Notes: generated by a model from the sequence alone, not told the origin. Shown: positions 10,626-60,482, numbered from the stretch's first letter. The stretch is DNA of 64,000 nt from Haliotis rufescens (GCF_023055435.1 NW_025964223.1:44144001-44208000); one strand, 5' to 3'. Numbers and translations: made by a program.

Positions 10626-10679
10626 TATATAACCCAGTCCACTTTGAGTCCTTGGCATCCGAACCGAGAGACTATTAAG
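10626..10679 (+). promoter_or_regulatory. TATA box and short non-coding exon 1, copy 1
   Basis: TATATAA 10626-10632, CATC initiator-like motif ~30 nt downstream (10657), donor AAG|GTAAGT at 10679/10680; same spacing in five copies. Confidence 0.75.
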
Positions 10680-12046
10680 GTAAGTCAATCTGTGCAGGTT
10701 CTATTGAAATTCAAATAGATTTCATTGTTCGCCGCCGATTCTGTTCTGAAGATACTTTGATTAAGATTGTATTTGTTTGTGTCGCTGATCTTATCTCCGT
10801 GTACCCGACGGCTCAACAGTAGATGAAATACGTTGAATATGAACCCAAGCACTCGTCTGAATACGTGTATTACCCTTGAATATCCAGGTTAAATGGGTCT
10901 TCAGCAACCCATGTTTGTCGTAAAAGGCGACTATGCTTGTCTTAAGAGGTGACAAACGGGATCGGGTGGTCAGGCTCACTGACTTGGTTGATGCATGTCA
11001 TCGTATGCCAGTTGCGTAGTTTGATGCTCATGGTGTCAATAACTGGATTGTCTGGTTCAGGCTCCATTATTTACAGACAGCCGTTAGCTGGAATAGTGTT
11101 CGGCGTTAAACAACAACAACAACAACAAAAGAATACATGTGTGTATCCTCCCATGTTGAAAGATATTTGCTTTCTAATCTCTCAGCACCGATACACAAAC
11201 CTCATCAACAATAGCGATGCGAGTTTATGAGCACATGCATTATTGAAAAAAAGTGTAACTCGTTCTGAAGTCTTGACGTTTTGTTCATATCTAATTAAAG
11301 TCACCTGAACGGTTACCAATTGTCTTCTCCTTCAAACAGAAGAAATTTAACACTGTTTTTAATTTGACATCCGGCGTATGAGAATCCTCAGTCCCCCGTG
11401 GAGTATAGTTTTAGTCAGTCTGTACATTTGTCGTGTTTTTCATTTTCCACAGTCCAAAATTACTGCTTAGCCGTATCCTACAACAATCAAAGCTGTATTT
11501 TCTTGCAACCAGAAGTTCATTGGGGATAACATTGTGAATCATGTTTGTACATATCTAAACATACAGCAGACACCTTAAATACTTTTATGTTAAAGAAATT
11601 GTTTTCTACATTGTCTGAGAATGGACTCAGACACTAGAGAGTGATTAGTACACGTAGCCAAATGCTTCTCCAACTGGGCCATACGAGACAAGTCATGTTG
11701 GTGTTCCTCTGGTTATTTAGGAAGCTCACCTGTAATTTCAAGGAAGAAGTTTCAACGAAGAATCGGTATCTGTCAGAATGAGCTTTCGAGTTGGTCAAAG
11801 TAGCTGTCAGACACCAAAATACGTTAATAGAAGGTACTTGTTGTTACCCTGCCTGAATCATCTCGGATTAAGGGGCAAAAGCAAGGACTGGTCGGCTCGG
11901 AGTCTGTACACACAATGTACGTCGCTATTTAAGTGCAATAAGCTTGAACGCGACGTTAAACACCATTTCACCTAACCTCACCTCAATCAATGTGATAACT
12001 AATGTATGCACAGCTGATTGCTTTATGTGCCCATATCTGTTTCCAG

Positions 12047-13800
12047 ATGAGACTGCTCGTGGTGTTCCTCCTGATGGCTTTGATTGTTCTCCCCACGGAG
12101 GGACTGTTCCGTCGTCGTCGTCGTCGCAGATGGCTCCGTGTCAGAGGCAGTAGGGTTCTCACTGGCCTTGCTGTTGCTAGCAGACTCGGTCTGATAGGAA
12201 AGAGAGGTAAGACGATGAAAATGTTGACCACCATCCGACCTGTAACCGTTTTTATATGAATGTTGTATTGCCAAATTAACGATGTGACATATTCACATAG
12301 GTATTAACTGTCGTTAAGGCCGATGTGGCGATTTCAAGAAGCGTCATACGACTCTTGCTCAAAATTCGTTTCATCAGGGTTACAGCATTCAATGCCTTAG
12401 TAAAGCTTTCATAAAGTTTTACGATAGACATGTGGAGCACAATTCCACATTTGACCCCTCCGTGACTATAATGATATCCGATACTCTTCTCTACGTTGAC
12501 TTGTATCATCTTTGCCCTGAACTATTGACGCGCCTTTGCAAAAATTTAATAGCAATGGACACGCTATAAACGACCATATCATATTACTTAATCTTTTGAA
12601 ATGTTGAGAATTATAAGATTGAAACATATCCTATTTACATATCATAACGTCACATCTTTATTGCTTCTAGGGACATAGGTTAGGCACAGGTTCACATTGC
12701 TCTACATTTTGCTTGTAAGAGGCAAACAAATTGGATCGGTGGTAAAGCTCGGTGTCATGGTTAATTGCCGCTGGCGTTCCCCGTCGGCATGGGACGCTGC
12801 ATATACTGCCAACCACTGGTTTTTCAGGCCTAGACCAGTATATTTACTGGCTGCCATTACAATTACAATATTGATGAATGCAGCATAACACAACAACCAA
12901 ACAAAGAAACACGCAAAATTCATACCATTCCAATTTGATTTACAAAATAGTAGAATAAAATCATGCATATGTTTTGTTTGTCAATTATAGATATTTTGGT
13001 ATATACACGTAACTAGGTATTATCATTTCCTGTTGTCGGGGAACTGCATTGTTCGATTATTAATGACATTCACGACCAATCACGTATTTTTGTCAGAGGC
13101 ACAAGATGACCTTTTCTCTGCTGATCTGAATGAGGATGGGAACATTGACCAATCGGAGGCTGAGAATCTCTTCGACAAACGCGATGCGGAAGAAATCATG
13201 CAATCGGCTGACATTGACGGTAAGTAACAAAATAGCAGATGCATAGTTTTAAAACTGTCATATGTATTTATCATGAGAGTCCATTGTGATTCACTTCTGA
13301 AAATAAACTTTGTTTGAGTAGTGTAGGGTGTCCTTAAACGCAGATTTTGCCTTGGCCACATGCTCAGTAGGACTGTTGAGGGTTCCTTGCATTTGAACTA
13401 CATTTATGGCTTGTCAACGTATCCCAAATACGTGGATCGATGCGCAAGATGTCAGTCACTGGATTTTCTGGTCCAGACTCGATTATTTGCAGACCTCTGT
13501 CATATAGCTGGAATATTTCTGACTGTGGCGTTAAACAAAAAAACAAAACAACATTTATGGCTGTGATTGTATCCCTCTCTATTTAGCATTCATTGGTTCG
13601 TCTTTGTGTGTTTCAGGTGACTCTGTTGTAAGTCATGAAGAGTTCATCCGAGGAGCGGAAGACTTTTTCTCTCAACGTGTGTACTATTCTATTTTATCGA
13701 ATATAATTATAAAATATCACTGCATTTTTCTAATGATGATATGCGTACCACTCCTCTCTTTTTCATGGCTTTATTTGCTTTTGTTTTAGATGCTGAGTAG
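12047..13800 (+). CDS. Secreted cationic peptide / EF-hand precursor, copy 1 (spliced, 117 aa)
   Basis: Coding exons 12047-12206, 13097-13219, 13617-13676, 13790-13800, all GT-AG and phase 1; 354 nt joined, open to TAG. Protein MRLLVVFLLMALIVLPTEG|LFRRRRRRRWLRVRGSRVLTGLAVASRLGLI|GKR|EAQDDLFSADLNEDGNIDQSEAENLFDKRDAEEIMQSADIDGDSVVSHEEFIRGAEDFFSQHAE. AATAAA at 13865-13870. Exon sizes are shared with the three paralogs. Confidence 0.9.
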
Positions 13801-14845
13801 ACATTTTCGACAAAAGTACAGCAAGATGAAATAATCTGTCAGATTTTCGACACCGGTGCTTGAAAATAAATCAGTGCAGAACAAACTGTTTTTATCATTG
13901 TTATTTGTCACTAAATCTGAAAGGACCCGTGAAGATCCCGGGTAGAATAGGTCTTCAGCAACCCATTCTTGTCGTAAAAGGCTACTATGCTTGTTGTAAA
14001 AGGCGACTAACGGGATCGGGTGGTCAGGCTCGCTGACGTGGTTGAAGCATGTCATCGATCCCGATTGCGTGGATCGATGCTCATGATATCAATCACTGGA
14101 TTGTCTGGTCCAGACTCGATTATTTACAGACCGCCGTCATAAAGCTGGAATATTGCTGAGTGCGGCCTAACCAACCAACCAACCAACTTAACCTGGAAGT
14201 CGCATACGGTTCACTTAACCTTCAGCAAATGACCAATTACACGGATCTACATTAGATGACATTCGCATACTTTGATTCCATCCATTGTGTTACATTTTTT
14301 ATGACTCGGGCTTTGATATTTACGTTGTTATTTTAAAGTAAAATAAATAGCACTGCAGTATATAACGGAAGAGAAGTGTGTGTTGTGTTTTACATTTAGT
14401 CACTGAGGGAGGAAGTGAATAGTTTTTTTTTCAAGAGGCCACAGTATGTGACCTGTGAACAACACAATGCAAATTATAACCCACACTCAATAACACATCC
14501 AACCGGCCTAGTTGTTTAAGGTGGAAATGACTTATGTCGTTCATAAATTTTTAAGTGAAAGAAAAGTTTATGAAGACTAGATTTTGTGTGTTAAGGTTAC
14601 AAAAAAAACCCCCAAAATCAACGTTCGACGTACGTGAATGAGGCTGTCAGAATGCTGCTATTCAGAACATGCTGGACAGAGGGTTACTTACGTCATATTA
14701 ATTTGGTTCTACTGCATATTGACAGCGAGGTTTACGTCTTCATGAATGACATGACCTGTAAGACATCACTGTAATACAAACGAGGGGCAAAGATGGATAT
14801 ATATATATATATATATATACTACTTCATGTCCGTTATTCAGTTAT

Positions 14846-14930: not shown

Positions 14931-14988
<58 letters not shown>

Positions 14989-15354: not shown

Positions 15355-16796
15355 TGTAGGCCGATGACACAACGCTCTTGTCTACAACCCCACGGGGCTT
15401 ACAGTCTTCCCTTGATTCAGTTCGTTTATATGCCAACAAATGGCGACTCACCTATAATGCCTCCAAGAGTAAATCACTTGTATTCTGCAAAACACGCCAG
15501 CGTCATAATAAAGTAACCTACAAATTTGGCGATGCAATAATTGACACTTCCGACTCCGTCAAATATGGCGGAATAATCATAAACAATAATTTATCCTGTA
15601 AAGAAAGAATCATGACATGTTGCTCAAAAGCAAGAAAAAGTGTTAATTCACTACGATCACTCGGCCTCAACGACTCAGACCTCCACCCAGTTGCATGTGT
15701 CAATATATGGAAAAGAATGATTTTATCTACAAGCTTTTATGGATGTGAATTGTTACCAGCCTTTTACGGTAAAGAACTTGAAATGATTGAATGTACACAA
15801 CGTTACTTTGCTCGTCATATACAAGGATTTGGTAAAAGACATCCAACCGATTCGTCTATTTCTAACTTGGGTATGTGGTCAATGAATGGCTACATTGATA
15901 AATGTAGACTACAATTATTAGGAAGGCTCTGCAATAACGATTGTAACTCAATAACAAAAGACCTATTTTGTGCTCACATTGCTACCAAAGCTTTTGTCAA
16001 TATTAGCCGTCCAGTAAGCATATGCAACATCCTTCTATATACTGCTAAAAAATACCATTTGGATAACTATATAAAGGGATATACTGATAGCGGTTCGTTC
16101 CCAACAAAATCGGCTTGGCGAGCTCTTGTAATCAGACGTCTATCAGAGAATGAACAGTACATCTGGAGAGAGAGACTAGCACAGAGACCGGATCTTTCAC
16201 GATACCATAAAATTCATAAACGGTTACAAATGCATGTTCTTTATAATGTAATGTATCTCTATCCACATCTAAGACAACCCCTGCAACTTTGTATTAAAAT
16301 CGGATCAAGAGCAAAAGTGTCGAAAGAATGTAACCATTGCAATAGACATTGCTATGACTATGATTGCCATATTATTTTGCACTGTGAAATGTTTATGCCT
16401 GACAGAAATAATTTCTTCTCATGCCTAATTGATAAACTTGATGTAGATGTATACGTGAAAATAGATATGCTTGACGATGATGATATGCTTTCTTTCTTTC
16501 TCGGTGCAGATGTCCATGACTTGACAAACGAACTTGATTACGATACTTGGCAAAGCATCATACTGTCTTTCTGCCACTTCGTATGGAATTTAAAGAAATA
16601 CCTTATGTATATCTACTAGATACCTTACTGCTCTCAAAATGTACATTGTAAATTGTTTATTCATAGCAGTGTATAACATGATTTCTTTGTATATAGTCAA
16701 GTAATTTCATTGATGTATTTTAAATAATGTACTTGCCCATGTAAAATCTTCGGATTCAACTCTGGAGGAAATAAAGAAATTCATTCATTCATTCAT
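15355..16796 (+). mobile_element. 5'-truncated LINE (RT C-terminus and Cys/His domain; ORF 15378-16619)
   Basis: (Y>*)ADDTTLLS...LQSSLD...WRLTYNASKS, VKYGG, CNHC...HIILHC; AATAAA 16770 followed by (ATTC)n tail. Confidence 0.88.
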
Positions 16797-19090: not shown

Positions 19091-21705
19091 TGAAAATGCG
19101 TAGTCAGCAACATTCAGACTGTAGCTAATGTATATATTTGAAATATCCACCGTGCCTCCCAATCACCTTTGTTATAAGCAACTAAGCTAGCGGATACAAG
19201 CATTGATCACGTTTCGAATCATTTGTCCAAGGTTTCTTTACGAAAGCCTAACGGTACGACGGCCTAATGGTGCCTCTTTGGTAGCATATATATAATTATA
19301 TATTTATTTTTAAATCGAAATTTCGCGATATTACAATTATTGGTTTATTTTCACTAATTTGTTATTTTGGTCGTCATTTCGGGTATATTTTCGTAAATTT
19401 CAATTATTTTGCCGTTACTTCCATTATTTACTCGTGGTTTCAATTTGTTCTGCTTTTCAGTTGATGAAAGAGGCAGGGACAAACAAACAATGTGCCTTCA
19501 CAATATATACTATCAGCATCACCGTTGTGTGTTACTAGGAATGTGACACCACTGTCTCTTCAAAGCTTGTTTGCTCGTTTGTTGATCGCTTACCTCCTAT
19601 CATCAAAACATATATTGTCTCAAAAGGGATGCGACAGTTCGCTTTGGTGAGACTTGCTGTGTTGTTTTACAATTTGAAGGGTCACTCACCTGTGACGCTC
19701 CCATGGATTTGTTTGTTTGTTGTTTAACGTTCGGTATCATTCTGCAATATTCCAATTTGGACAAGACAATCAAGTGATTGACATAATGCGCATCGATCTA
19801 CGCAATTAGGATACATGCATTAACCAAGTCAGCGAACCTGACCACCCGATCCCGCTAGCCGTATCTTACGAGGCATAGTCGCCTTTTACGGCAAACATGT
19901 ATTGGGTTGCTGAAGACCTATTCTTACTCTGATCTTAAAAGGGGTACGCCCACACTGAAGAATTATATATCCGTGGCATCAAATATGAAACCCCCCAGAA
20001 AATTTGAAAATCCAAAAGTACCATAATAAACACTGAACGAAAGTCAGCAAAGAAGAAGTCTTCAGGGCCGGTTAAAATAATATATTGTTTATTCCGTTAG
20101 TAGGTTAGGTCAGGTAAAATATGGTTTAACGTCGTGTCTTCTTCTACTTGTCCCGGACACGTGCCGATTTTATAGTGCAAGCCCACAAAATATTGGCAGC
20201 AGTTTAACATGAATACTCCATGGCCACCCCGACACTCCGACACTCCGACACTGTATTCTGACATCGTTTTAGCCCCTTAATGCCTGTAACATGGACCACC
20301 GTGTAACGTCTTTTGGTATGACGCTGCCGCGGATCGGACCCCATATCTTTGCTCTCCAGGCAGACACACTACCACTAGACCACGTAGGCATTCGTAGGCA
20401 TATACATTTTCATTCAATATATTAAAGTAACTATAAGTTCAATAGTTCCGTTTAAACGGTATTGTGATCCATAATTGTGTGCCTCCAAGACAAAATATGC
20501 AAACGAAATGTTATGAGGAAGCTTAAATATTCACTGTCACAGGAATTATGTACAAACAGCAAGCAGGTTTCAAAGCGACACTTCATTACACACCGTTAAT
20601 ATAAATGATACCAATTACGATTTTTGTGTGACTATCCAGCATGAGTATAGAACTATTATTTGTTTGTGTTACACCTGAGGCGAAATTATTTTTTCCACCG
20701 TTTTCTGGAACAAATTATTTTGTGACAAAAGTACCAGCCTCCTTCCTGTATAACTTAAGATGTGAAATAAGGAGACTGTTGTTTATGTAGAAGATAACAT
20801 ATTTCGTAATTTTACTTAGATTAATTAACACTGGGACTGCAAAACCTCACCGGCTCGCATCAGACACACTCTTACAGGTGGTGGTGAGTCAGCTATTATT
20901 AGCAGAATAATATACCTGTATAAGCACCGACGTGAACTTACAGGTTTGGCTTGGGATAGGTTGCTGTATGGGGCACACAGATTAAGTCTGCCACATCATA
21001 GTGACAGATGTCATCAACATGGGGCATGTCAATGTTACAATTAATGGTTGATTCTATTTATCAGAAACCATATGTTGTCAATAATTTTTAGAAAGGTCAT
21101 ATGCGATGTTTGATTTGTTTGATGCTTTAGGCCACACTCAGCAATCTTTAATCTACATGTATATTGCAACGGCTTGTAAATGATCGTTTGGATTAGACAA
21201 AGGTTTGGCAAAAAGTCACATCGTATGCCATTTTTACTATCAAACACCTCTCAACCCTTTCTCTCACAGAACTCAATGAAAGTCACAAAATCATAATCAT
21301 AAGAACATCCAACATAAAGATGTGTTTATGCATCACTGTCAAATATTGGCGATACTAGGTCTTCGCGAAAAATAGTATGAAGGGAATTCCAAAGTTGACC
21401 ATCGTTGAACGATATCAGATTATCAAGAAAGCATTATCAGAATCTCATATTCCTGTCATGGCAACGGGATCCTTTCAGTAGCCTCGCATAAGTTGCATGC
21501 ATAATCTGTGCCTAGTTTAGCAATGTTCATTGTGAATGAAATAAAACAACCCCAAAACATAATTTATAATCACACGAACACATGGTGATGATGCAAGGCT
21601 GCTATCGATTATACAGTGCTGATTGGAACTGACGTCGTGTTGAAATACATTATTCATCGCTTGTCATGCCAAACACCTCATCTGTGAAAGTGATCGTACA
21701 CCTTC

Positions 21706-21761
21706 TATATAAACCAGCCAACAATGAGTCCATATCATCCGAATTCGAGAGACTACTCAAG
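21706..21761 (+). promoter_or_regulatory. TATA box and non-coding exon 1, copy 2
   Basis: TATATAAA 21706-21713, exon about 21737-21761, donor AAG|GTAAGT. Confidence 0.75.
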
Positions 21762-22395: not shown

Positions 22396-22657
22396 CCCGT
22401 GAAGATTCCGGGTTAGAATAGGTCTTCAGCAACCCATGCTTGTCGTAAAAGGTGACTATGCTTGTCGTAAAAGGCGACTAACGGGATCGGGTGGTCAGGC
22501 TCGCTGACTTGGTTGATGCATCTTATCGATCCCAATAGCGTGGATCGATGCTCATGATATTAATCACTGGATTGTCTGGTCCAGACTCGATTATTTACAG
22601 ACCGCCGTCATATAGCTGGAATATTGCTGAGTGCGGTGTTAAACAACAAACCAACAA
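22396..22657 (+). mobile_element. SINE-like family B (representative; other copies about 4256-4524 -, 6215-6435 -, 8637-8895 +, 10872-11128 +, 13926-14187 +, 17194-17421 -, 19708-19940 -, 34925-35090 -, 59370-59615 +)
   Basis: CCCGTGAAGAT...AGGCGACTAACGGGATCGGGTGGTCAGGCTCGCTGAC...GCTGGAATATTGCTGAGTGCGGCGTTAAAC(AAAC)n; TSD CACAAAATAATA at this copy. Confidence 0.85.
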
Positions 22658-23649
22658 CACAAAATAATATATGTTTGTATTTCATGTATTTGTTCAGATG
22701 AAACTTAAAGAAAAATAAGAATGCCCATGAAGAGCTAAGTTCAAAGTGTTCGCCAATGATTCTGTTAAAGAAATAGATGATATCCATAGTTTTGTGGTTA
22801 TTTTCTCCCTGTGTGTTTGGTTAGTGTTTCATGCAGTTATATTGGCGTACGAAAATCCTCAGTCTCCCACTGAGCCTATGTTTTATGATCTTCCGCAGTT
22901 CCAACCGACTCTTCCGCTGAAAATGAAAATGTTTTCTCGTTTATAACGACCCATTCGATTAGATAATAGATATCATCCCACTTTTGAAAGTTGTTTTTTA
23001 TTTATATTTTTTTATGAACCAGATTTAAACTACGGAGTTAATAAACTGTGAACCACGTTTGTCCATATTCTCAAACAAAGATAATTAAATATACATTTTT
23101 GTCTCACAGCTGTTCTCTATGAAGATGAGCAGGGATGAGAAAAACACACACAATGATATGAATTGACTCAAATATTGATTACTGTGCGTAGCCAGATTCT
23201 TCCTAATACTGGTCGGTATTCATGTTGATGTTGGTTATTTTGGAAACAGACCTGTACTTTAAAATAAGCGGGTGTCAGGGTAGATTCGGTACACGTGATG
23301 TTCCTTCAAAATGGATTTCGCGAGAGTGAGCTTTTGTATTGGATTCTGATTCAGAAACCTCAAGTTAAAAAAACCCGAAACACGGTTGGTTTGAATCTAC
23401 CATGACAAAATGACCGCAGATAACCGAAGTCCTTGGTGATAATAATTATAATTAGTTTTTATTCTCACTTTGGAATTTGTTTGAACATCCATCTAAACCC
23501 AATATGTATAACTGAATTACTTTTAAGAGTGGCATTAAAACAAAATACACTAACACACACACACACACTTGCTTTTAGTTGTCCGCCATTGGTTTTCCTG
23601 TAATTATAATGCATAACTGATTCTTTTATGTGCCATTCTCTGTTTCAAG

Positions 23650-36578: not shown

Positions 36579-36630
36579 GTCAATAGGGAAGATCGGTATG
36601 ATTATACAAAGATTGATCTCTGGGACTGCA

Positions 36631-37719: not shown

Positions 37720-37773
37720 TATATAAAGTCAACAAGCATGTCCCTGGCATCTGACTTCGAGAGGCTACTCAAG
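37720..37773 (+). promoter_or_regulatory. TATA box and non-coding exon 1, copy 3
   Basis: TATATAAA 37720-37727, exon about 37749-37773, donor AAG|GTAAGT. Confidence 0.75.
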
Positions 37774-45808: not shown

Positions 45809-45862
45809 TATATAAAGTCAACAAGCATGTCCCTGGCATCTGACTTCGAGAGGCTACTCAAG
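45809..45862 (+). promoter_or_regulatory. TATA box and non-coding exon 1, copy 4
   Basis: TATATAAA 45809-45816, exon about 45838-45862, donor AAG|GTAAGT. Confidence 0.75.
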
Positions 45863-46367
45863 GTAAGTTACTGTGTGTAGATACTATTAAAAGTACGTTG
45901 ATGATATTGCGTTAATTCTACTCATATAGGTTAACAGATGTAGAACCAGTCCTAAAAATGTCTGTATTTGTTTGTCACTCTGGTCCATATGGCAGATGTG
46001 ATGTTCCTCTTGTTGCAGATTAAAAAAAATACAACTTTATTTTCAATGAAAAGCTTATCAGCGCAAATTCAGTAAATGAAAATTTCACTCAAAACGGAAA
46101 GCATATGAGTGTGATTTCGATTTTGACAAAGTAACTGTCAGATTCTGAGTCTCGAAGTTTAAACATAACTCCAATCTTCCATGTCAAAATATAGGCGGAA
46201 GCTTTGGTTACAGTCACTGACATTAGTTGTCAGCTCTCGAAACATGCATCATTTCGGGCGTTCTTCCAACGGCAAGTTAGCACCATTGTATAACTGAAAT
46301 ACTGTTACTGTTCCTTTTCTGTTACTATGCGTATCTGATTGCTTTATTTGACGTTCTTTGCTTCTAG

Positions 46368-47844: not shown

Positions 47845-49493
47845 ATGCTTTCAACACTAGTGCTACAAGTGATATAATATTTCAGTGTTTCTATCCGATG
47901 CCTGAAAATAAATTATTGCAGAACAAACTGTTGTGTAATTGTTATTTGTCAGTTTTCGAAGCCTTCAGCAAATGGCTAAAACTTAAAACAAGAAATCTGA
48001 AACAGGTGCTGTACAACTATTTTGAATCCATTTCTGACTCTGTTACATGTGTATGAGACAGTAATTCGGGTTTAAATATTGACCAACAGAAATGACACAA
48101 GACACACAGGACTCCCGTTTTGAATGGCAAAACACACCAGCAGCATGCATTTCATAGTAGTTATGGAGGGGCTGCATGAGCCGACACTATGTAAACTATA
48201 AACAATACAATGCAAATTGTAATCCAGACTGAAGAAGACAAACAATTGACTAGTTCCTCATTGTCAGCCTGGACATGACTACGTGTTGTTTAAAGTGGTC
48301 ATCATGCATGACTGAGTTAGTATGGTTTTACGCCGCTTTTAGCAATATTCCAGCAATATCACGGCGGGGGACACCAGAAATGGGCTTCACAAATTGTACC
48401 CACGTCGGGAATCGAACCCGGGTCTTCGGCGTGACCATTTGACCATTAGGCTGGCAATCATGACATGACAATACATATACATGTATTTCATTAAGGAGAG
48501 CATTGGTCCGAAACGACCTAGGACCGTCCAAATATTGTTTCATCCACAAAAGACTTAAAGGTTTTATAATTACAAAGGACTATTTGTCTTTACGTCTGGG
48601 TCGACATTCAATTCCCCTGATCATGACAAGGCATGGCCTGTTTCACGATTGTAATCATGTTAAAACAACACCAGCGAGTTGAAAGGCGTAGTTCATGATC
48701 AGTAATAAATAGGAAATCATGTCCGCCAAGAAGAGAAAGTTAAATTGTACAGCACATGTAACCATGTCGTGTAAGGTGTTCCTCCTACGTCAAGTTGAAA
48801 TTGTATTCATAGCTTGCGATAAACCCACCTCACGCACTCACGCTTTGTGATCGTTAGTCTACCGATATGCACTTTGAAATCACTCTGGACATTAGTCGGA
48901 GCTTTATTCAAAACTGCATGACTTGTGTTGCGAGGGTTAATAAATGTGCAATTTTGCAGATCTAGATGTGGAACGAATGGTCCATATGCACATTCAATAA
49001 ATGAATATTCCCCAAATTCCTCTACGTTTTAAGGAGGGCAACTATAATGAAAACAATATAGGCATTAACCAACCGTGCTTAATGAGGAATGTGGTAGAGC
49101 ATGGTTTCACTGCAATGTATACGATCGATATACTCTTGTCATGAAGAGTATTGTTTTACGCTGTTGTGATTACAACACGGGTTTAACGAAAACTACCATG
49201 AACAAGAGGTGCAATTATTTGTACTGTCTCTATTAACATTGCATTTAAATTTATAGAAACAGATAATAATTGAATTTTCCAAACGTCATAGCTTGAGAAA
49301 ATGATCTACGCTTCACTATAATGATGTAAAACTGTTGTACATGCAGAATGTCGGACATTGTGACCTAATGCCAATTCTCAAACTCACTCCGTTTTAAAAA
49401 AGAGAATTATTTCTGTGGTTTTCAATCTTGAATATGTTGCCAAAAGTGAAAGTCGTTTGTATATAAGTTGAACGTGATAGGGGTTCCACATAA

Positions 49494-50102
49494 ATGGAAA
49501 AGAACGAGTACCAAACAGTCATCAAGTTTTGACTTTTGAGTAAAGTACACCCCAAGTAATTCCTGACCGCATGTCACAAGTGTGTGCGGGGAAGTGTCCT
49601 AGCTATTCCACTGTTAAACGTTGGGCAGCTATGTTTAAGGCTGTGAGAACAAGCCTTGAAGGTGAGCCTAGGTTTGGACGTCCCTCAACTTCCATCAATG
49701 AAGATTCAATCAAGGAGGCAGAAAAACTTATACTTTCAGATAGACACCATTGCTTAACTTGAGAAGGACTCAGGTCTAAACCATGGATCCATTGAAAATA
49801 TTATTTATGAAATGTACAGATGAATAACACATCTACTCGTTAGGTGCCAAAGTTTCTAAATTCTGATCTTAAGGAAAACATAACTGACATTGCCAGATGA
49901 AATGAGTTAATTGATGATGATTTCGTCAAATTCAAAAAAGAGATTAGTATAGGGTGATGAAACATGGGTCTACCACCATGATCCCGTGTTGAAACGTCAA
50001 TCCATGGAATGGCACCATTACACTTCTCCGACACCAAAGAAATTCAAATCTTCAAGACCAGTGAAGAAAGTTATGGGCACTGCATTCTTGGATGCAAAGG
50101 AT
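49494..50102 (+). mobile_element. Mariner transposase relic, duplicate of 41364-41972
   Basis: Same motifs; part of duplication unit B. Confidence 0.85.
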
Positions 50103-51085
50103 GATTACTTAAAAAGTCTTAGAAATGCCTCTTCTCAACATTCAAATGTCTCGATTTGTCAACCATGTCAATTGGTTCCTTTGTTACAATTCACATGTTT
50201 TGGAGTTATTCATGACTGTACCCGCTGCGATATAATTTAGTTTTAACAACTATTGACCAGGAAATCCACACTTCTGAATGCAAAACAATGTCAGTAAATG
50301 ACAAAACCTTCTTTCATCGTCTGATAAGAATACGAAACATGTTCATTTTAATAAACGGAACTGGGTGAACTAATTAATTTAAGGGAGTGAACATTGTTTT
50401 GCCACGACAGGACACAACATTGTTATTTGTACATACAGCCGAATCTCATTATCTCAAACTCCGTTATCTCCAATGTACCGATATCTCACAATCAGAATTT
50501 GGAATATATTTGAAATTTCAAATAAAAACTGGCATTTATATATTACACATGTATACATACATACAATGTACACACATTAGAGATCTCATACCCTGCTTGA
50601 CAGCAAACTTGATATCAAATGACTCAAAATGAATCATACAGTCCCCTATCGACACCTGACACAACTCTGACAGGATGCAGTTGAACGTGATCTATGTGCG
50701 TTGACGACAAAACGTGGCTAAGGCTGAAGTTGTCACTGGTTAGAGTGACTGTAGCCATTATTATTTGTCATTTCCTTATAACACATTTAGATAATTTATT
50801 GTTGATATTTGATCCCTGTCAGCTTAAGCGTTTTGTACGAATTTTGGTTTGATAATATATCTGTTATCTACAGACCATAATCGTGGAATTTATGGAAATG
50901 AAAAATACAATAATGATAAAAACTGGAGTAACAGGTACTACATTATGAATACCAATTAGTACGCTATGTTGGTCTGTGTAAAGTAGAATCCGAAGACCAG
51001 AACAAATGATATAATCCAAGCTAAACTGTCAGTAGCTTGTTTTCTTCAGAGACGGCAATTATAAACAAAGGTTGCATATTCAATT

Positions 51086-51254
51086 ATAAGGAAGAGAATT
51101 TATGGATGTCAACTTCTCCATTATGAGAACATAACGTTTCGGAGTATATGCTTAATCCTTCATCAGTACTTTCACATGATGAAGGAGTAGGCATATACTC
51201 CGAAACGTGTTCCTCATGATAAAGAAGTTGACATCCATAAATTCTCTTCCTTAT
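51086..51254. repeat. Foldback element with hammerhead-like cores (shorter relative at about 52926-53023)
   Basis: ATAAGGAAGAGAATTTATGGATGTCAACTTCT is a perfect inverted repeat of the right end; the interior is also self-complementary. Confidence 0.75.
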
Positions 51255-51537
51255 GTGTATCACTTCTAAATGCCTTTCAAAGACTTTATTCAAAATAATT
51301 CAGAAAAAAACTATTAATCTGTTATAATATAGTTCATTGTGAAAAAGCAAACACAAACATATGTGTTGACATGAACACAAATGACTTTCCTAATTCACAC
51401 CTATATCATGCTATTAACGTCAGCTTCACCGTTATCAATTCCTAGTCACATATTGCGGTGTCTGATGTGGTGTTGAGACTAATATTCGTCGTTTATCACA
51501 CAAAACACCTCAGCTCTGATTGCGGCCATAAACCTCC

Positions 51538-52755
51538 TATATAACCCAGACAGCAATGCGTCCCTGGCTTCCGAATTCGACGTTCGTCTGAAGGTAAGTA
51601 AATAGGTACATTCTATTGACGATCAAACAGTGTTTGAAGACAATTATTCCTTAACGTCTCCGTTCATGATATTTATACGTTTGCGTTTGTTTACCATTTG
51701 TAGGTTTAAAGTGTTTACTGTCAACAGACATGTTATTGATCATGACTCGATCGTCTTCCGCTCAGTGCCCATATGTTTGTTAGTGTTTCTCATTTTCTCC
51801 TATGTCTATTTATATAGTTAAAGAAGTGAACGAATTAATGGTTTCATAAAAACAATGCACACGGTTATTTATGTTTGAGATTCATAGTCAACTTTAAAAT
51901 GAAAAGAGCTTCTTTTCTGTCCATACGTTCGTCCGCCTTAAGAAAGTACTCACATAATTTTCCCACATCCGCAATGTGTATGATTTCCATTGTGCCTGAT
52001 GTGACGAAAAATACAGATACTCCCTCTCATTCTGACCAGTATGTTTCTAGATTTTCTTTGACTTTGTAAAGTCTCTGACTTTATTTATTAATATTATTAT
52101 TAAGCTTTGCAATTCTGATGTTTCAAAGGTATGAGTTGAACTGCATGGCTAACTTTCATTTGTGATATGATAATTCGATGTTTTGTCATTGCGTGTTTCC
52201 GGTGACTCCATCTCTAGTCACATCCAGAGTTCATCCCAGAGTTGTTGATTTTTTTTTCAATGTTTAATCGAATATATGACAGATTAAATATCATGGTTAT
52301 TCCTCTCATGATGATGAGTAGCAAATAACCACGGTGACCTCTTTATCGCGTGGGAGGCACGGGTTGCCAACTCGTCTATGGCGCCACAAGTCGCTATGCA
52401 GAGTTGCATCCCTTGGGCACAGCAGAAACCTATGATCGAGGGTTGAAATCCCAGTTCGTCCAGATTATGTTTCCAGGTTTGTCAACACCATACCCGTGCT
52501 CGTGCGTTTTACCAAAGTTGTAAAATTCTGAGACCTGTATTACTTCGGGCTTTTCTCCCACACTAAGCTGACACGCCGTGATATAACCGGAATAATGTCC
52601 AAAGGGGCATACAAATCCTACTCACTCACTCACTTTTTATCATTTTTGCGTTTTTTGTTTCAGATGCTGAGTAGATAGTTTCACAACCAGGGCAGTACCA
52701 TGAAGATGATATGATATGATATGATAATGCTTTCTACTTAATGCTTGAAAATAAA
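51538..52755 (+). pseudogene. Decayed family copy 5 lacking the peptide exon and first EF-hand exon
   Basis: TATATAA 51538-51544 and non-coding exon 1 with AAG|GTAAGT (51593/51594) are present. Degenerate exon 4 at about 52202-52260 (GTGACTCC...GAGTTCATCC, acceptor CAG>CCG). Last exon CAG|ATGCTGAGTAG 52664-52674, AATAAA 52750-52755. No exon 2/3 similarity seen in the ~600 bp between. Confidence 0.75.
52352..52633 (+). mobile_element. SINE family A, diverged, in last intron of pseudogene copy 5
   Basis: GGAGGCACGGGTTGCC head, GCTGACACGCCGTGATATAAC, (ACTC)n tail. Confidence 0.8.
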
Positions 52756-53141
52756 TAATTGCAGGACAAAGTCGTGTGTTATGTGTATGTCCATACATAA
52801 AACTTCAGCAAACAGCCGTAGGTTCCACTCCACTCTCAATAATCTTCCAATACAAATATGTCCCTCTCATTTGTTTTTCCTGATCTGTACAGATCAAGTC
52901 TTTGAAGACATCTCGAAGTGACACACATAAGGGATAGAATTTATTGATGTCAACTTCTTTATTATGACGTTGTGTTCCTTATCATGATAAATAAGTTGAC
53001 CTCCATAAATTATCTTTCTTATGTTTAGATAAAGTTTTCAGGCACGATTATCGAAATTGATAATTAACACTGCTGTTTAGAATGACATAACACCAATGAC
53101 ACAGTGAGATATTATGAGTTGTATGGGTGTGGTAATGAATG

Positions 53142-56100
53142 TCATCTTTTTTGTTTACATTTCTCCAGAGAGTTCTCCTATCTATCACACAATGAATATG
53201 GGTGGTATAGATCGCCTTATACACTATGTTGAAACTACTTGGACTACTCATGATAATCATCATTTAGTTCTGTCTAGTGATTTTAATGCAAGGATGAGAG
53301 ATTTTCTTGATTACATCCCATCAGATTCACTTGAATTTATCCATGATGATAGTCAAGACTATCCATCAGACAATCTTGATATGCCTAGGAAGTCTAAAGA
53401 CAACATGCGACATTAAAACTATGGGCTAAAGCTTGCTGAAATGTGTGCTGCCTATGGTATTCATGCCCTAAATGGGCGTTTATTTGGAGATAAAGTTGGT
53501 AACTTCACCTGTATTACCCATAATGGAGCAAGTGTAGTAGACTATGTGCTAGCAGCGTCTGACCTCTTTCCACATTTTAGTGATTTGAAAGTACTTGACA
53601 GAGATTAATCCTGTCACTTTCCTCTTTCATGTGAGATTAACCTTAACCAAACAAACCCTCAATATATGGAAGCAAATGTGTATGATGACTGTCAGCACAA
53701 TATCAATAGCCAAAATGATCTTACAAATGATGACTCACAAGAGTGGATGAAATACACATGGAATGAAGATAGACATTTCGACTTTTAACAAAGTTTCAGA
53801 GTATTTTTCTTGAAAATTATGATGAATGTTCAGCATTGATCAATGTCAGAGTTAATCAAGGCATTCATGCAATTGTGAATATGTACCATAAGGCAGGAGA
53901 AGGTTTTGGAAAAGTTTACAAAAAAACATTTCACAGTATTAAGAATAAACAACCGCCATGGTGGGATGATGAACTGGAATGTGTGAAACAAAATAAATAC
54001 CGTGCACTTAGAAATCATAGGGACTTTAACCAAGATTTAAATGTGTATCGAAAGGAAAGAAGGTATTTTAAGAAGTTATTTTCACATAAAAAGAGCATAT
54101 ATCTGAGTAAGCAAAGAGATTTATTATCTTCTTCCTGTTCAGACTCTAAGCAATTTTGGAAGCTATTAAAGAATCAGAGACAAAAAGGTAGCTCATCTAA
54201 CAACATCACCACTGGCACATGGTAGAACTATTTTAAGAACTTACTTAATTCTACAGTTTATAATTTTTCATCTTACCCTAATCAAGAGCTGCAATTAGAA
54301 TGTGACACTGGAGAAGATATACTATGTTTGGACTTAAACAAACCTATTCCAGAAGAAGAAGTTTATCACCGCATTAGAAGTCTGAAAAATAATATAACTC
54401 CTGGACCAGATGGGATTGCAAATGAATTTGTGAAGTCAACCAGAGACTATATCACTACACTACTTGCAAACTTCTTTAATCAGATGCTTTTTACTAACAC
54501 ATTCCCAGATCTTTGGGATCAGAGCATTATATGTCCGCTTCATAAAATTAGACCGGTGCAGGAGCCTGGAACCTAAAGAGGCATATCTCTCATTGACTCC
54601 TTTTGTAAGGTTTTAATAGCAGTGTTAAACAATAGACTCAAAGACTGGTGTGGCTGTCACAACATACTATCAGAAACGCAAGCCGGCTTTAGATCTACAT
54701 ATTCAACAGCGGACCATATTTTCACTTTGAAGCAATGATAACAAAATATCTTTTGAAGAAAGGGGGGAGATTTTACTGCATCTTCATAGATTTTAGAAAA
54801 GCGTTTGACTTTATAAATCATGATGTTCTTTTTCAAAGTCTTCATGATGTAGGGCTCAGAGGAAACTTCTTAAATTTTATTACATCTATGTACACCAAAT
54901 CTTTCTGCTTGTGTGAGGACAGATTCTGGTTTGTCGGATTATTTCAAATGCAGCACTGGTACCCGTCAGGGGCGTATAATGAGTCCTCTAATCATTTTGA
55001 TTTTCATTAACAAACTTGTGATAAAATTGGAGGAAAAGAGTTGAAGAGGAATTTTTATGACTTGTGATATTCAAGATATATTTGCATTGATGTATGCAGA
55101 TGATGTGTCAGCTGTTTCAGACTCAACAAATCAACTTTAACAGAAAATTAATGTACTAGAAGAATTTTGCAATTCAACAGGAATGAAGATAAATCTCAAT
55201 AAGACGAAAATCATGGTGTTTAGGAATGGTGGCCCACTGAGAAAATTTGAGAAATGGTATTTTAAAGGTGAACAAATAGAAACAGTGAGTTGTTATAAAT
55301 ATCTGGGAACTCCCTTCACAACGAAACTTTCATGGGCTAAAACACAGATATGTCTAGCCGCTCAAGCCATTAAAGCTTTATTCTCACTTCAACAATTTCA
55401 ACAAAAGTTTGGATATATTCCTGTTGGAGAAGTTTTTAATTTTTTTGACTCAATGATAACTCCCATTTTATGCTATGGAGCTGAAGTATGGGGAATTAAC
55501 TACTGTAACACTATTGAGCAAGCGCATCACAGATTTTGCAAAAGATATTTGAAACTTAATAAATATACTAATAACAACATGGCTCAAGGAGAATGTGGGA
55601 GAGTGCCGCTTCAATATCATTATATGTCCAGAGCAGTGAGTTACTGGTGCAGAGGGATCCATATGGAGCCTCAAAGATTACTATATCGGTCCTATTGTAT
55701 GCTCAAGTCACTTGATGACTCTGGTAAAACCACATGGGTATCACACAACAGGAATATCCTGTTTCAGTAAGGATTTGTTTTTATTTGGATAAATCAGGAA
55801 TGCGGTGATAGCAAATTATTGATGATGAAATTTTAACAGAGGCTGTATGACTGTCTTTCTCAAAACGGGCATCTCTCCATAGAGCTCTCATCTAAATGCA
55901 AAGATTACTCACAGTACAAATCTCTCCTTAATGTAGAAATATACTTATTATCATGTGAAATCTCTGCTTATTATAAAAAGATTAATATGTATGTTCAGGT
56001 GTAACAACTTTAAACTTGCAGTTGAAACCGGAAGACATTCTAAAATCCCATATGAAGAACGTGTGTGCGTGTATTGCCACTCCAAAGATTTAACTCAAAT

Positions 56101-57793: not shown

Positions 57794-58077
57794 GGGGGCA
57801 CGGGTGGCCCAGTCGTCTAAGGCGCCTCGATTCGCTGTGCAGAGTTGCGTCCCTTGGACACGCCAGAAACCTATGATTATGGGTTCGAATCCCGGTTCGC
57901 CCCGGTTATGTTTCTAGGTTTGTCAGCACCATACCCGTGCTCGTGGGTTTCACCAAAGTGGTAAACGTCTCAGATCTGCATCACTTTGGTCTTTCCTGCC
58001 ACAATAAGCTGACACGCCGCGATATAACTGGAATACTGTTATAAGCGGCGTTAAACCCAACTCACTCACTCACTCAC
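57794..58077 (+). mobile_element. SINE family A
   Basis: Same body; TSD TAATATAAT.CT. Confidence 0.88.
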
Positions 58078-58282: not shown

Positions 58283-58480
58283 TACGTTGTCACAACATTG
58301 TAGTAAGGTTGTGAATTGGTAACGTCGTGATACAACGTTGTCACAACGTTATTATTACGTCACCGTGCAACGTTATTTCACAACGTAATAACAAGTTTGC
58401 ACATTAACCTTATGAAAACGTTTTGCATCGGAAATCACACGTTTTGTAACGACGTTTCTGAAACGTCGGTGAAACGTTAT
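58283..58480. repeat. ACAACGTT-rich short-period repeat
   Basis: Repeated CACAACGTTGT / AAACGTT motifs. Confidence 0.55.
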
Positions 58481-60334
58481 ACAGTTTCTTGATAGTCTTT
58501 TAGGAATAGAACTGCTTCATGAAAATCAAGTTAATTTCGTCAGAATACCAAGGCTGTAAAGCATTCCTTTCCTATTTATTCGGCATTTTGATTTTCATCT
58601 TGAGATACTAAAATCTTACAGTTTTCCCTACATTTTAGGCAATTATAAAGAATGTGTTTTCTTTTTGGATAAACTTCAAATGTATGTTTACGCGTCCATT
58701 ATAATTACTGGACGGCTGTGTCCTGCTTTCTGGATAATAGAATGAGAGGGTCTTGTGTTGCAATAGTGCTGAACTATATTTGTTTGTTTGTTTCTCGTTT
58801 AACGCCGCACTCAGCAATAATCCAGCTATATAACGGCGGTTTTAACTATATGTCACTGATTTCGTATTGCTGTCTCTAGATTTCTGTGTGTAATAAACAA
58901 GCAGAATGTTAAGTTAATTGTTGACGTATTTATTTATAAGAATTAACTTAAATATGCTATTTGCGTAAAAACCGGTGTGGACACTTTGCGTAAATTTAAA
59001 CAGTGTATACAGTTTATATCCCCATTTACACAAAAGCCTATTGAAGTCAATTCTTATATATTCATTATACTAGTGAAATACTGTTTCACGTGCTGTACAA
59101 GTTTTGAAACTTTCTATGCTAATGAATGAATGCATATATATATATATATATGTAATGTTATACTTGTTGTACAAGTAGACGTTATTTTATATTGCAGAGA
59201 TCAACTACGGGAACAAATGAAGACTCCACAGGAATTTAATACTCAGTGAATTAAATTGATAAATTTAAATTCCTGTTTTGTTTTCATTTGAAATAGAAAA
59301 CCCTATGTCAAACCTTATTTGTTTCGGCAGATGCAGGAATATCAAGTTATCCATTTATTGCAATTTGGTCAGAATAGGTCCTCGGCAACCCATGTTTGCC
59401 ATAAAAGGCACCTATGCTTGTCGTAAGAGGCGACTAACGGGATCGGGTTGTCAGGCTAAGTGACTTGGTTGATGCATGTCATCGTATCTCAATTGCGTTG
59501 ATCGATATTCATGATGTCAGCCACTGGATTGTTTTGTCCAGACTCAATTATTTACAGACCGTTGTCAAATAGCTGCAATAATGCTGAGTGCGGCGTTAAA
59601 CAAGAAAACAAGAAAAAGCAATTGGGGGAATCGGCGTGGTGTAAAAGTTACTCATATACATGATCTACACATTCTTTAGGCAAACTGTCAACGCATATTC
59701 GACCAGACGAGTATTACCGGAACGCCTCAAATCGATCCAAACCGCTTTGGTATCAAAGTCACTCAAAGGAAATATGGTATGGGTGACGATAAAATTCTAC
59801 TTTCCAGAGCAGTATAATTAAGTGTGCAGTGAAACTGTTGATCATATACATATGTAAACAATATATATATACTCTACTTTCTAAAAGAAATGACTAAGCT
59901 CCACACTGTTTTGTACTGCATCAGGGAATCCAACCGCGCCGCCTCAAGTGGTAATCCCCGTCATCTAGCCTTAGTATGACTCAAACACACACCCGATGTT
60001 CAACGTTCATATTGATCCATTTTCAACATCAACCGGGGTCTGGATTTCAATCTAATTCCAACGTTACCTCGTTAATATAGTTCGATTTAAAAAAATAGTT
60101 TGGTGTTTAAATGTATTGCTTTGTAATGAGTTATGTATATCTAGATTTATGCTGTCTGTCAAAATATGGATCGAAGTTGTATTTGTTGACGTTCATCAGC
60201 TGATGAAGACAATGCCTCCATAAGAATATTTATCCTGAAGCCCTTCGCGCATCATGGAATTTGCTCACGTGAGGCACTGTCGTCATAACCTGATGACCGT
60301 CAATAAATACAACTTCAATTCTGAATTATGTGCC

Positions 60335-60482
60335 ATATGTTATTCCGCCCATGATGATTAGTAAGACTTAGGCATCTCTTTATCACGTGTGCATTTTCTG
60401 TTTCAGATGCAGAGTAGATACTTTCCAACCCAGCGCATTAAGATGATATGATAACGTTATCTTCTTAATGCTTGAAAATAAA
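60335..60482 (+). pseudogene. Family remnant 6: last intron end, terminal exon and 3' UTR only
   Basis: TTTCAG|ATGCAGAGTAG 60407-60417 then GCTTGAAAATAAATAATTGCAG as in copy 5; downstream flank to about 62940 resembles the copy 5 flank. Confidence 0.7.

Follow-up and report, generated by a model that had tools for sequence, protein, structure and literature searches.

The myticalins of Mytilus, grouped here with the modiocalins of Modiolus, are tested antimicrobial peptides (AMPs) expressed in the gill (PMC5577615, PMC12294457). In the Mytilida, mytimycin precursors contain a mature 54-residue antifungal peptide with 12 cysteines, expressed in hemocytes (PMC8004829). In the pearl oyster Pinctada fucata, EFCBP (ABF48089) was described by Huang et al. 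in 2007 (BBA 1770:1037, pmid 17451885). Later reports describe it as an extracellular protein of shell formation and repair with two EF-hands that is rapidly up-regulated upon shell damage (PMC7810044, PMC3120837), and the citing papers examined mention neither a cationic peptide nor a processing site. Here we analyzed a 64,000-nucleotide stretch of the Haliotis rufescens genome (the window), which contains genes of what is, by appearance, an unstudied antimicrobial peptide family related to this pearl oyster protein, so far read as a shell formation factor. A preliminary description of the window had not linked an EF-hand pro-domain to any named family. That statement does not hold: mytimycin precursors have one (PMC8004829), myticalins match the overall layout (PMC5577615), and EFCBP was published in 2007.

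In both the myticalin and the abalone precursors, a conserved signal is followed by a Cys-free, Arg-rich peptide of hypervariable sequence, a Gly plus dibasic amidation/cleavage site, and an anionic C-terminal extension. In both kinds of gene, exon 1 is UTR only, the ATG lies at the 5′ end of exon 2, which encodes signal, peptide, and site together, and a phase 1 intron comes after or near the site (PMC5577615). Both families are multigene and include pseudogenes, and a further likeness is seen in myticalin subfamily C, which carries Arg runs at the N terminus and lacks Pro. By order of parts and gene layout, the abalone genes would qualify as myticalin-type precursors. However, the myticalin extension is described as low in complexity and unstructured, with an EF-hand not reported, and is encoded by one exon, whereas the abalone extension is spread over three exons. 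Antimicrobial activity has been measured for myticalins; the likeness of the abalone genes to them is one of layout, judged by description. By eye, the myticalin signal consensus resembles the Pinctada signals (MKG or MKA start, Leu run, central Cys), which we note as a lead only.

The likeness to mytimycin precursors is also one of layout: signal, mature peptide, dibasic site, an EF-hand-bearing anionic extension of ∼75 residues, and a non-coding exon 1 (PMC8004829). Membership in the mytimycins was considered and rejected, as the 12 cysteines that characterize them have no counterpart in the peptides of the 25 family members examined, all of which lack Cys.

Gene models and the tandem cluster

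Four intact genes (g1 to g4) were found on the + strand at ∼10.6 to 13.9, 21.7 to 25.6, 37.7 to 39.8, and 45.8 to 47.9 kb of the window. Their exon sizes and phases, as well as their TATA boxes and poly(A) signals, agree with the preliminary description. The coding exons measure 160 (151 in g2), 123, 60, and 11 nt, and all coding introns are in phase 1. In g1 to g4, the TATA box CTATATAA lies 55 to 57 nt upstream of a short non-coding exon 1; it was invariant across all five regions of the exon 1 alignment. An AATAAA signal follows ∼65 nt 3′ of each stop codon. GC replaces GT as the splice donor of exon 2 in g2 and of exon 3 in g2, g3, and g4. The features are as follows.

10625 to 10679, + strand: g1 TATA box (10625–10632) and non-coding exon 1, donor after 10679 (exon 1 alignment)
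12047–12206, + strand: g1 exon 2, with ATG, 19-aa signal, 31-aa Arg-rich peptide, and G-K-R, ending in phase 1; product equals RefSeq P0005
13097–13219, 13617–13676, 13790–13800, + strand: g1 exons 3 to 5, acidic EF-hand pair and stop; AATAAA at 13865–13870 (splice model)
21705 to 21761, + strand: g2 TATA box and non-coding exon 1 (exon 1 alignment)
23650–23800, + strand: g2 exon 2, 151 nt, 28-aa peptide, Arg run 9 nt shorter, GC donor; product lies within RefSeq P0151
24920–25042, 25350–25409, 25521–25531, + strand: g2 exons 3 to 5, GC donor after exon 3; AATAAA at 25593–25598 (splice model)
37719 to 37773, + strand: g3 TATA box and non-coding exon 1, containing an ATG at 37738 (exon 1 alignment)
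38221–38380, + strand: g3 exon 2, signal, 31-aa peptide, and G-K-R (splice model)
39141–39263, 39526–39585, 39702–39712, + strand: g3 exons 3 to 5, GC donor after exon 3; AATAAA at 39775–39780 (splice model)
45808 to 45862, + strand: g4 TATA box and non-coding exon 1 (exon 1 alignment)
46368–46527, + strand: g4 exon 2; product equals RefSeq P0002
47266–47388, 47658–47717, 47834–47844, + strand: g4 exons 3 to 5, GC donor after exon 3; AATAAA at 47907–47912 (splice model)
35500 to 51800, + strand: young 8.1-kb tandem duplication with g3 and g4, units 93–99% identical (repeat families D8–D20, spacing 8065–8152)
51340 to 52782, + strand: remnant 1, with promoter and exon 1 (51340–51630; TATA 51537–51544), broken exon 4 (52173–52315), and exon 5 (52623–52782; AATAAA 52750–52755)
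60342 to 60531, + strand: remnant 2, exon 5 with AATAAA at 60477–60482 and nothing else

These gene models are not a product of chance, because dN/dS between paralogs is 0.07 to 0.56 and identical proteins are present in the database. The two remnants reported beside the intact genes are both real but only partial, with remnant 1 lacking exons 2 and 3 and remnant 2 reduced to exon 5; tblastn of the remnant 1 region detected no coding remnant. The interval delimited in the preliminary description, 10626 to 60482, starts at the g1 TATA box and ends with the poly(A) signal of remnant 2.

At least seven copies of the family are present in the cluster and at least 24 loci in the Haliotis rufescens genome, in line with the earlier proposal that the family is expanding. 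Relatives were detected in further Haliotis species and also outside the genus, in Gigantopelta, a vent snail, and in Pinctada (EFCBP), and the family shows expansion, retained orthologs, and pseudogenes. It is large and old in molluscs, growing by tandem duplication and decaying by pseudogenization. The genes had been presented as hidden; RefSeq, however, already models g1 to g4 with the same junctions as our splice models, naming them "uncharacterized" or "calcium-binding protein 5-like" (the latter for g1, P0005). The accompanying prediction, that automatic annotation would recognize only an EF-hand protein, was borne out by the names "calcium-binding protein 5-like" and "oncomodulin-like."

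Precursor architecture and the EF-hand tail

The spliced proteins are 117 aa long (114 aa in g2). Each begins with a hydrophobic leader of 19 aa, continues with a Cys-free peptide of 28 to 31 aa and G-K-R, and ends in a 64-aa tail. The peptides of g1 to g4 contain 11 to 13 Arg/Lys and no acidic residue, and the tails contain 19 to 21 Asp/Glu. This tripartite organization (signal, cationic peptide with its Gly plus dibasic site, acidic EF-hand pair) had been proposed from the window and was strengthened by a family-wide alignment of 41 members from Haliotis, Gigantopelta, and Pinctada. Signal peptides were called by rules based on core length and the residues at positions −3 and −1. The uncharged core has a median length of 14 residues (range, 11 to 19), and the −3/−1 rule is satisfied in 40 of the 41 members, with G, A, or S at −1 in 40 and a small residue at −3 in all 41. 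Because this core is too short, the leader is unlikely to be a membrane anchor.

Conservation differed strongly by part across the 41 members: pairwise identity was 79% for the G-K/R-R site, the most conserved element, 36% for the EF pair, 34% for the signal, and 18% for the cationic peptide, the most variable. Family peptides are 17 to 44 residues long and Trp-rich, carry 3 to 16 Lys/Arg, and almost never include acidic residues. G-K-R, G-R-K-R, or G-R was present in nearly all 41 members, and the four monobasic sites have Arg or Lys at −4, −6, or −8. Gly before a dibasic or monobasic site, with upstream basic residues in the monobasic cases, is the pattern expected of a prohormone-type substrate. 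In subfamily B, a phase 1 intron lies 5 codons before G-K-R. Between paralogs, dN/dS was ∼0 to 0.16 for the signal, 0.06 to 0.57 for the EF pair, and highest for the peptide (0.12 to 1.06); within the Haliotis subfamily studied here, the peptide is 70 to 98% identical across four species. Judged from these alignments, a conserved signal, Gly-Lys-Arg, and EF ligands combined with a hypervariable peptide are the signature of processed effector peptide precursors.

Pinctada fucata EFCBP is a probable homolog of the abalone family, as is a P. imbricata paralog. In a search of 1.8 billion proteins, positions 3 to 112 of the abalone profile aligned over the full length of EFCBP (P0121) with an E value of 6.5e-4; P0168 is a second Pinctada member. 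The order of parts in EFCBP is that of the abalone proteins: after a signal with a small-x-small end come Trp and an Arg run, then ∼30 aa of basic, Cys-free sequence, then G-K-R, and lastly the acidic EF-hand pair. Unlike them, it has longer EF linkers and two Cys in the EF pair, and its peptide is unrelated beyond the Arg/Trp start.

In the tail, oxygen ligands at positions 1, 3, 5, and 12 were found in two 12-residue loops. All 41 members have D1, N/D3, D5, G6, I/L/V8, and E12 in loop 1. In loop 2, D1 is present in 37, D/N3 in 34, D/N/S5 in 38, and E12 in 38 of the 41, with a hydrophobic residue at position 8 in 39 and usually Ser rather than Gly at position 6. Searched against the PDB, the family profile matched calmodulin, calcineurin B, and CaBP/EhCaBP with E values of 1e-11 to 2.6e-16. 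Single sequences matched Pfam EF-hand_1 at 1.8e-5 and 24.4 bits, just below the 25.4-bit gathering cutoff. The AF2 model (pLDDT ∼75 over residues 60 to 110) places helices at 54–60, 72–78, 81–91, and 101–115 and strands at 69–70 and 99–100, a predicted helix-loop-strand-helix unit occurring twice, the two loops being linked by a short beta bridge. Foldseek returned weak E values (0.02), yet every top match was an EF-hand protein, and VIA alignments to calmodulin-type lobes gave Z scores of 6 to 8 and rmsd values of 2.4 to 4 Å over 60 to 67 residues. Because these structural alignments span model residues 51 to 117, the 64-residue acidic tail is, as modeled, a complete two-site EF-hand pair starting exactly at the cleavage site.

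Alternative functions and proposed processing

The reading that we favor as probable is a set of peptides that are secreted, amidated, and active on membranes (probably antimicrobial), each made with an EF-hand pro-domain. A possible though unlikely alternative is a calcium-binding protein that acts outside the cell in forming or repairing the shell, with the EF pair handling calcium in the extrapallial space, the cationic segment serving as its tether on acidic matrix, on chitin, or on cell surfaces, and G-K-R cleavage absent or incidental. EFCBP, with its full-length alignment to the abalone profile and its shared layout, favors this role, being extracellular, equipped with two EF-hands, and induced by shell damage according to the reports (PMC7810044, PMC3120837), as does the very strong conservation of the EF-hand calcium ligands. 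However, such a role would leave unexplained a best-conserved Gly plus dibasic site next to a cationic segment hypervariable in sequence and length, as well as at least 24 loci with pseudogenes, and induction by shell damage would suit a wound or immune effector equally. Calcium in seawater and hemolymph is ∼10 mM, which would saturate the EF sites permanently. A signal peptide plus G-K-R is also the classical signature of neuropeptide processing and amidation, and the good conservation of the peptide among the four Haliotis species within the subfamily would fit precursors of neuropeptides, hormones, or pheromones acting on receptors rather than membranes. We nevertheless regard this as improbable: between subfamilies the peptides are hypervariable, keeping only charge and Trp, large tandem families with pseudogenes are unusual among neuropeptides, and each precursor holds a single peptide beside a structured calcium-binding pro-domain. 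Moreover, 11 to 13 positive charges with a hydrophobic helix are a membrane-active design.

EF-hand pairs mostly work in the cytosol, and the strong positive charge C-terminal to the hydrophobic segment would be compatible with an uncleaved reverse signal anchor, keeping the poly-Arg cytosolic (positive-inside rule) and the EF pair sensing cytosolic calcium at the membrane. The RefSeq models of g2 and g3, which add 12 to 32 residues N-terminal to the hydrophobic segment, point the same way. These extensions are not conserved, however: g1 has no upstream ATG, and in g2 the upstream extension is in another frame and crosses the TATA box. Because the upstream ATG and its frame are not conserved among paralogs, the RefSeq start codon of g3 (ATG 37738, inside exon 1) is probably wrong; in most family members, the start Met directly precedes the hydrophobic core. 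A core of ∼14 residues (11 to 19) followed by a small-x-small cleavage motif in 40 of 41 members, together with a conserved Gly-Lys-Arg to which an anchored sensor gives no role, makes this possibility very improbable. The gamete proteins of abalone are well known for their high charge and rapid evolution, and tandem families with variable cationic parts would suit reproductive or other fast-evolving secreted proteins (for example, in gamete recognition or acrosomal packing) whose function lies in charge complementarity with the tail or another protein. The same scaffold nevertheless occurs in a vent snail and in pearl oysters, EFCBP is reported from mantle and shell-related tissue rather than gonad, and dN/dS is below 1 within this subfamily; we give this explanation very little weight.

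If the genes do encode processed membrane-active peptides, the 19-residue leader, with its ∼14-residue uncharged core and small −3/−1 residues, would be a cleavable signal peptide. A convertase of the furin/PC type may then cut after the conserved Lys-Arg in the secretory pathway, a carboxypeptidase would trim both basic residues, and peptidylglycine alpha-amidating monooxygenase would turn the exposed Gly into a C-terminal amide, steps suggested by the motif and its conservation. The predicted product is a Cys-free peptide of 28 to 31 residues, with 6 or 7 Arg and Trp N-terminally and then a hydrophobic helix rich in Gly, Ala, and Leu. Several points count against this reading. Seven consecutive Arg immediately behind a signal peptide can impede translocation, the high peptide identity across four Haliotis species would suit a peptide aimed at a constant target better than an AMP caught in an arms race, and the shell formation interpretation of the sole studied homolog, Pinctada EFCBP, suggests by analogy another function. 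In the AF2 model, the peptide has a pLDDT of 50 to 56 and is not confidently packed on the EF pair, and the Pfam EF-hand score of single sequences lies just below its cutoff. By analogy with the myticalins, the peptide would most probably target anionic membranes, as a host defense effector with antimicrobial or cytolytic activity; poly-Arg plus a helix is a potent AMP design (PMC12371492).

The EF-hand tail would serve as a pro-domain, binding calcium within the secretory pathway, which is rich in this ion, and until release it may neutralize the cationic peptide, fold it, sort it, or condense it; such a role has been proposed for anionic extensions in the precursors of other mollusc AMPs. 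Melittin and calmodulin target peptides resemble the abalone product in being short, amphipathic or segregated cationic-hydrophobic, amidated peptides with an anionic pro-region, although in melittin the charged and hydrophobic blocks are in reverse order and no homology is implied. Peptides of this kind are classical ligands that calcium-loaded EF-hand pairs bind with high affinity, and by analogy we hypothesize that the abalone peptide may bind its own EF pair. Calmodulin-melittin structures (8aht and 8ahs) were among the fold matches.

Gene models, annotation and remnants

A six-frame scan for arginine runs picked out four open frames, nearly identical to one another, on the + strand at ~12.1, 23.7, 38.3 and 46.4 kb, each beginning with a hydrophobic leader and ending in G-K-R. 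Gene models were built with gene 3 as the template, with splice sites set by eye and then checked by script. In blastn searches with this template, five conserved pieces (promoter plus exon 1, and exons 2 to 5) were found in unchanged order at four places, and the script check returned uninterrupted coding sequences for all four genes after splicing.

Genes and remnants in the window
~10.6-13.9 k, + strand: g1, intact gene
21.7-25.6 k, + strand: g2, intact gene
37.7-39.8 k, + strand: g3, intact gene
45.8-47.9 k, + strand: g4, intact gene
51340-52782: remnant 1, reduced to promoter plus exon 1, a disrupted exon 4, and exon 5 plus poly(A) signal
60342-60531: remnant 2, exon 5 with its poly(A) signal only

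The coding exons of g1 to g4 measure 160 (151 in g2), 123, 60 and 11 nt; all introns are in phase 1 and all acceptors are AG. Donors are GT apart from several of the GC type, which lie in the GCAAG context typical of that type. GT stands at the matching positions in g1 and in the copies downstream of the window, and the RefSeq proteins use the GC-donor junctions.

Predicted GC donors, all in GCAAG context
23801: g2, exon 2
25043: g2, exon 3
39264: g3, exon 3
47389: g4, exon 3

Each of the four genes carries an invariant CTATATAA box 55-57 nt 5' of the exon-1 donor and an AATAAA signal ~65 nt 3' of the stop codon; the limits placed on the cluster by the preliminary description correspond to the first TATA box at one end and the last poly(A) signal at the other. 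The spliced models encode 117 aa (114 in g2), made up of a 19-aa leader, a Cys-free peptide of 28-31 aa with 11-13 Arg/Lys and zero acidic residues, G-K-R, and a 64-aa tail with 19-21 Asp/Glu. Genes g3 and g4 lie on a young 8.1-kb tandem duplication, the units of which are 93-99% identical. All four genes also share a conserved block, AACACCTCA(G/T)CTGTG, placed 26 nt before the TATA box (at 10599, 21679, 37693 and 45782). It holds an E-box-like CAGCTG or CATCTG and is a candidate regulatory site.

Database searches were queried with exon references (the exon-2 open frame and the exon-3 peptide) or with the identical database proteins that these returned. The exon-2 open frame found RefSeq H. 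rufescens proteins that match the spliced translations letter for letter: P0005 is identical to g1 (and named "calcium-binding protein 5-like"), P0002 is identical to g4, P0001 is g3 with 12 additional N-terminal residues, and P0151 is g2 with 32. The genes, which had been described as hidden, are therefore already annotated (RefSeq has all four), though uncharacterised. The RefSeq starts lie 12 codons upstream in g3 and 32 codons upstream in g2, both in exon 1 (37738-37773 and 21666-21761, respectively). We rejected these extensions as real coding sequence because the upstream ATG and its frame are not conserved among the genes. In g1 this ATG is absent; in g3 and g4 it would follow the TATA box by only ~18 nt; in g2 it belongs to a different frame, and the coding sequence modelled there crosses the TATA box. 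The extensions are probably artefacts of choosing the longest frame.

The initial observation of four genes with remnants is borne out. Both remnants are genuine, though vestigial; in 50-62 kb, tblastn queries with 15 proteins of the family recovered no coding traces of exons 2 or 3.

Regional conservation and the EF-hand tail

Regional identities were calculated from an alignment of 41 family members (A5), and dN/dS was estimated for the window genes together with two of the downstream copies.

Conservation by region: mean pairwise identity (alignment A5, pairs <50% identical overall) and dN/dS (Nei-Gojobori, window genes plus two downstream copies)
Signal: identity 34%; dN/dS about 0-0.16
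Peptide: identity 18%; dN/dS 0.12-1.06
Gly plus basic site: identity 79%
EF pair: identity 36%; dN/dS (EF region) 0.06-0.57

Overall dN/dS ranged from 0.07 to 0.56, and the regional values indicate purifying selection on all parts, weakest on the peptide. A conserved signal, processing site and pro-region combined with a hypervariable mature part is a pattern familiar from secreted effectors such as antimicrobial peptides (AMPs) and toxins. Across the 41 aligned members, the uncharged core of the signal is short (median, 14 residues), a small residue stands at -3 in 41/41 and at -1 in 40/41, and the residue after the signal is usually Trp. As read from the sequence, these features describe a cleavable signal peptide rather than a membrane anchor. 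A glycine preceding a basic site is an established amidation signal, and the near-invariant glycine of this family is, on its sequence context, predicted to be one; the same argument has been made for the glycine before the basic site of the mussel myticalins (PMC5577615, PMC12294457).

The peptides range from 17 to 44 residues and are alike only in composition, being Cys-free and Arg/Lys-rich, with 1-5 Trp and almost no acidic residues. With a hydrophobic moment z of -0.3 to -1.5, the window-subfamily peptide does not qualify as a uniform amphipathic helix; it has a block design, in which an Arg run with Trp is followed by a hydrophobic stretch rich in Gly, Ala and Leu.

Single sequences matched Pfam EF-hand_1 at an E value of 1.8e-5, slightly below the gathering score. 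The family profile matched calmodulin, calcineurin B and CaBPs in the PDB at E values of 1e-11 to 2.6e-16, with an inter-hand linker ~7 residues shorter than that of calmodulin. Canonical calcium ligands are present in loop 1 of 41/41 members and in loop 2 of 34-38/41. AF2 run with the 41-sequence alignment predicted helix-loop-strand-helix twice (pLDDT about 75); a shallow 14-sequence alignment gave a poor model (pLDDT 55.7). Structural alignment to calmodulin-type lobes spans model residues 51-117 (Z, 6-8), so the predicted EF domain starts exactly at the cleavage site and would be self-contained once processed. Taken with the calcium ligands, which are read from the primary structure, these matches argue that the acidic tail is a genuine EF-hand pair. 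The peptide was predicted to be helical at low confidence, and AF2 gave no confident docking of it onto the EF pair. ESM Atlas returned only generic EF-hand clusters (scores, <=0.80) and nothing for residues 1-53.

A gastropod and bivalve family and its mussel counterparts

The cluster holds at least seven copies, four in the window and three within 20 kb downstream, as found by an assembly search with the exon-2 peptide. None of the three downstream copies shows the 11-nt last exon at the expected distance 3' of exon 4 (e.g., L017 5199-5500 in g5 and L018 2859-3160 in g7); their 3' end must differ or lie further off. The same search found a divergent subfamily on two other contigs of the assembly; C379 carries four copies in tandem and C585 two. 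These copies share the signal and also have G-K-R and an EF pair, with a different, Arg/Tyr-rich peptide; their introns are also in phase 1, with the first intron five codons earlier. The exon-3 peptide query detected 20 loci in the assembly; with the four copies on C379 added, the genome total is at least 24 loci.

A profile search of 1.84 billion representatives added ~20 further small proteins that align over their full length. Among them are other loci of H. rufescens and loci of H. cracherodii, H. rubra and H. asinina, as well as numerous Gigantopelta aegis (vent snail) genes, some of them named "oncomodulin-like." The window genes group in a maximum-likelihood tree as a clade of Haliotis sequences only (support, 100/99), in which H. 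cracherodii has one-to-one partners of them, indicating that g1, g2 and g3/g4 were separate before the two species split; the mutual order of about ten deeper clades is unresolved. [quoted passage not shown] Used as a query, it found just one more Pinctada protein, the second member in that genus. Two papers cite EFCBP as an extracellular EF-hand protein with a quick response to shell damage (PMC7810044, PMC3120837). Other small EF-hand hits of the profile search (P0035, P0052, P0105 and others) proved to be ordinary EF-hand proteins of the cytosolic type rather than mytimycins.

Two groups of mussel peptides were compared with the abalone genes by published description. Myticalins are tested, gill-expressed AMPs (PMC5577615) that have the same tripartite precursor and gene layout as the abalone genes, but their extension is described as low-complexity, whereas the abalone tail is an EF-hand pair. 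Mytimycins are Cys-rich antifungal peptides; their precursors, like those encoded by the abalone genes, continue after a dibasic site into an anionic extension that contains an EF-hand (PMC8004829). Molluscs thus already have a precedent for an AMP precursor with an EF-hand pro-domain, and the preliminary description, which recognised no named family of this kind, was mistaken on that point. Its reading of the abalone genes as secreted, processed precursors stands, well supported by the comparative evidence. Antimicrobial action of the abalone peptides is suggested by reasoned analogy; joining poly-Arg to a helix is documented as a potent AMP design (PMC12371492).

No paper on the family in Gigantopelta or Haliotis turned up in literature searches. 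For abalone, a 2025 review of AMPs from aquatic invertebrates names molluscidin, macins, and fragments derived from hemocyanin or LGBP and nothing else; a secreted linear amidated peptide family is absent from it (PMC11767717). What appears to be new is a large conserved gastropod-plus-bivalve family that pairs linear Arg-rich, putatively amidated peptides with a complete EF-hand pair, the membership of EFCBP in it, and its sharing of protein and gene layout with myticalins and of the EF-hand tail with mytimycins. If the genes are as they look, red abalone alone would have at least 24 genes for secreted linear amidated peptides; abalone AMP genes, if real, would matter for a farmed and endangered animal group that suffers bacterial disease. 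EFCBP, a pearl-oyster "shell-formation" protein, would be re-read as belonging to a family of processed cationic peptides, and the unexplained EF-hand of mytimycin precursors would gain a broader evolutionary context.

A bolder proposal, which we think improbable, is that signal, variable effector, Gly-Lys-Arg and EF-hand pair form an ancient mollusc-wide host-defence cassette. Abalone, Gigantopelta and Pinctada EFCBP-type genes would retain its ancestral form. The mussel myticalins would be descendants in which the EF-hand decayed into a low-complexity acidic tail, and the mytimycins, with a Cys-rich peptide occupying the variable slot, would be either descendants or cousins that arose by exon shuffling. 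The calcium-loaded EF-hand pair would act as a calmodulin-like clamp on its own melittin-like peptide, which would stay harmless and condensed in secretory granules until freed by dilution or cleavage. A structured calcium-binding pro-domain joined to a calmodulin-target-like peptide would offer a testable model for the safe cellular storage of a membrane-lytic peptide.

Repeats and other features of the window

Between g2 and g3 lies a GC-rich insert (52-56% GC, against about 38% in its surroundings). Its long open reading frames match RVT_1 reverse transcriptase (E value, 5.7e-20) and, weakly, Phage_integrase tyrosine recombinase (E value, 5e-4); the insert resembles a DIRS-like retroelement belonging to the host genome. 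Two long open reading frames in spacers had no Pfam match. ARAGORN called no tRNA genes in the window; a tRNA-derived SINE-like element with a GGGAATCGAACCCGGG motif was recognized by eye downstream of g3. Introns and spacers of the cluster also hold short dispersed repeats of two families (282 nt and about 170-250 nt), probably SINE-like elements, which blur apparent gene remnants.

Other features of the window
712-1392: tandem array (family D1), 73-nt unit, about 9 copies, 67-97% identical
15378-16619, + strand: spacer open reading frame, 413 aa
28300-33300, + strand: GC-rich insert
40185-40320: tRNA-derived SINE-like element
55183-55770, + strand: spacer open reading frame, 195 aa
36631-36912, 44696-44977, 52353-52634 and 57794-58075; also 8735, 10892-11136, 13385-14189, 22407-22660 and 59367-59617: dispersed short repeats
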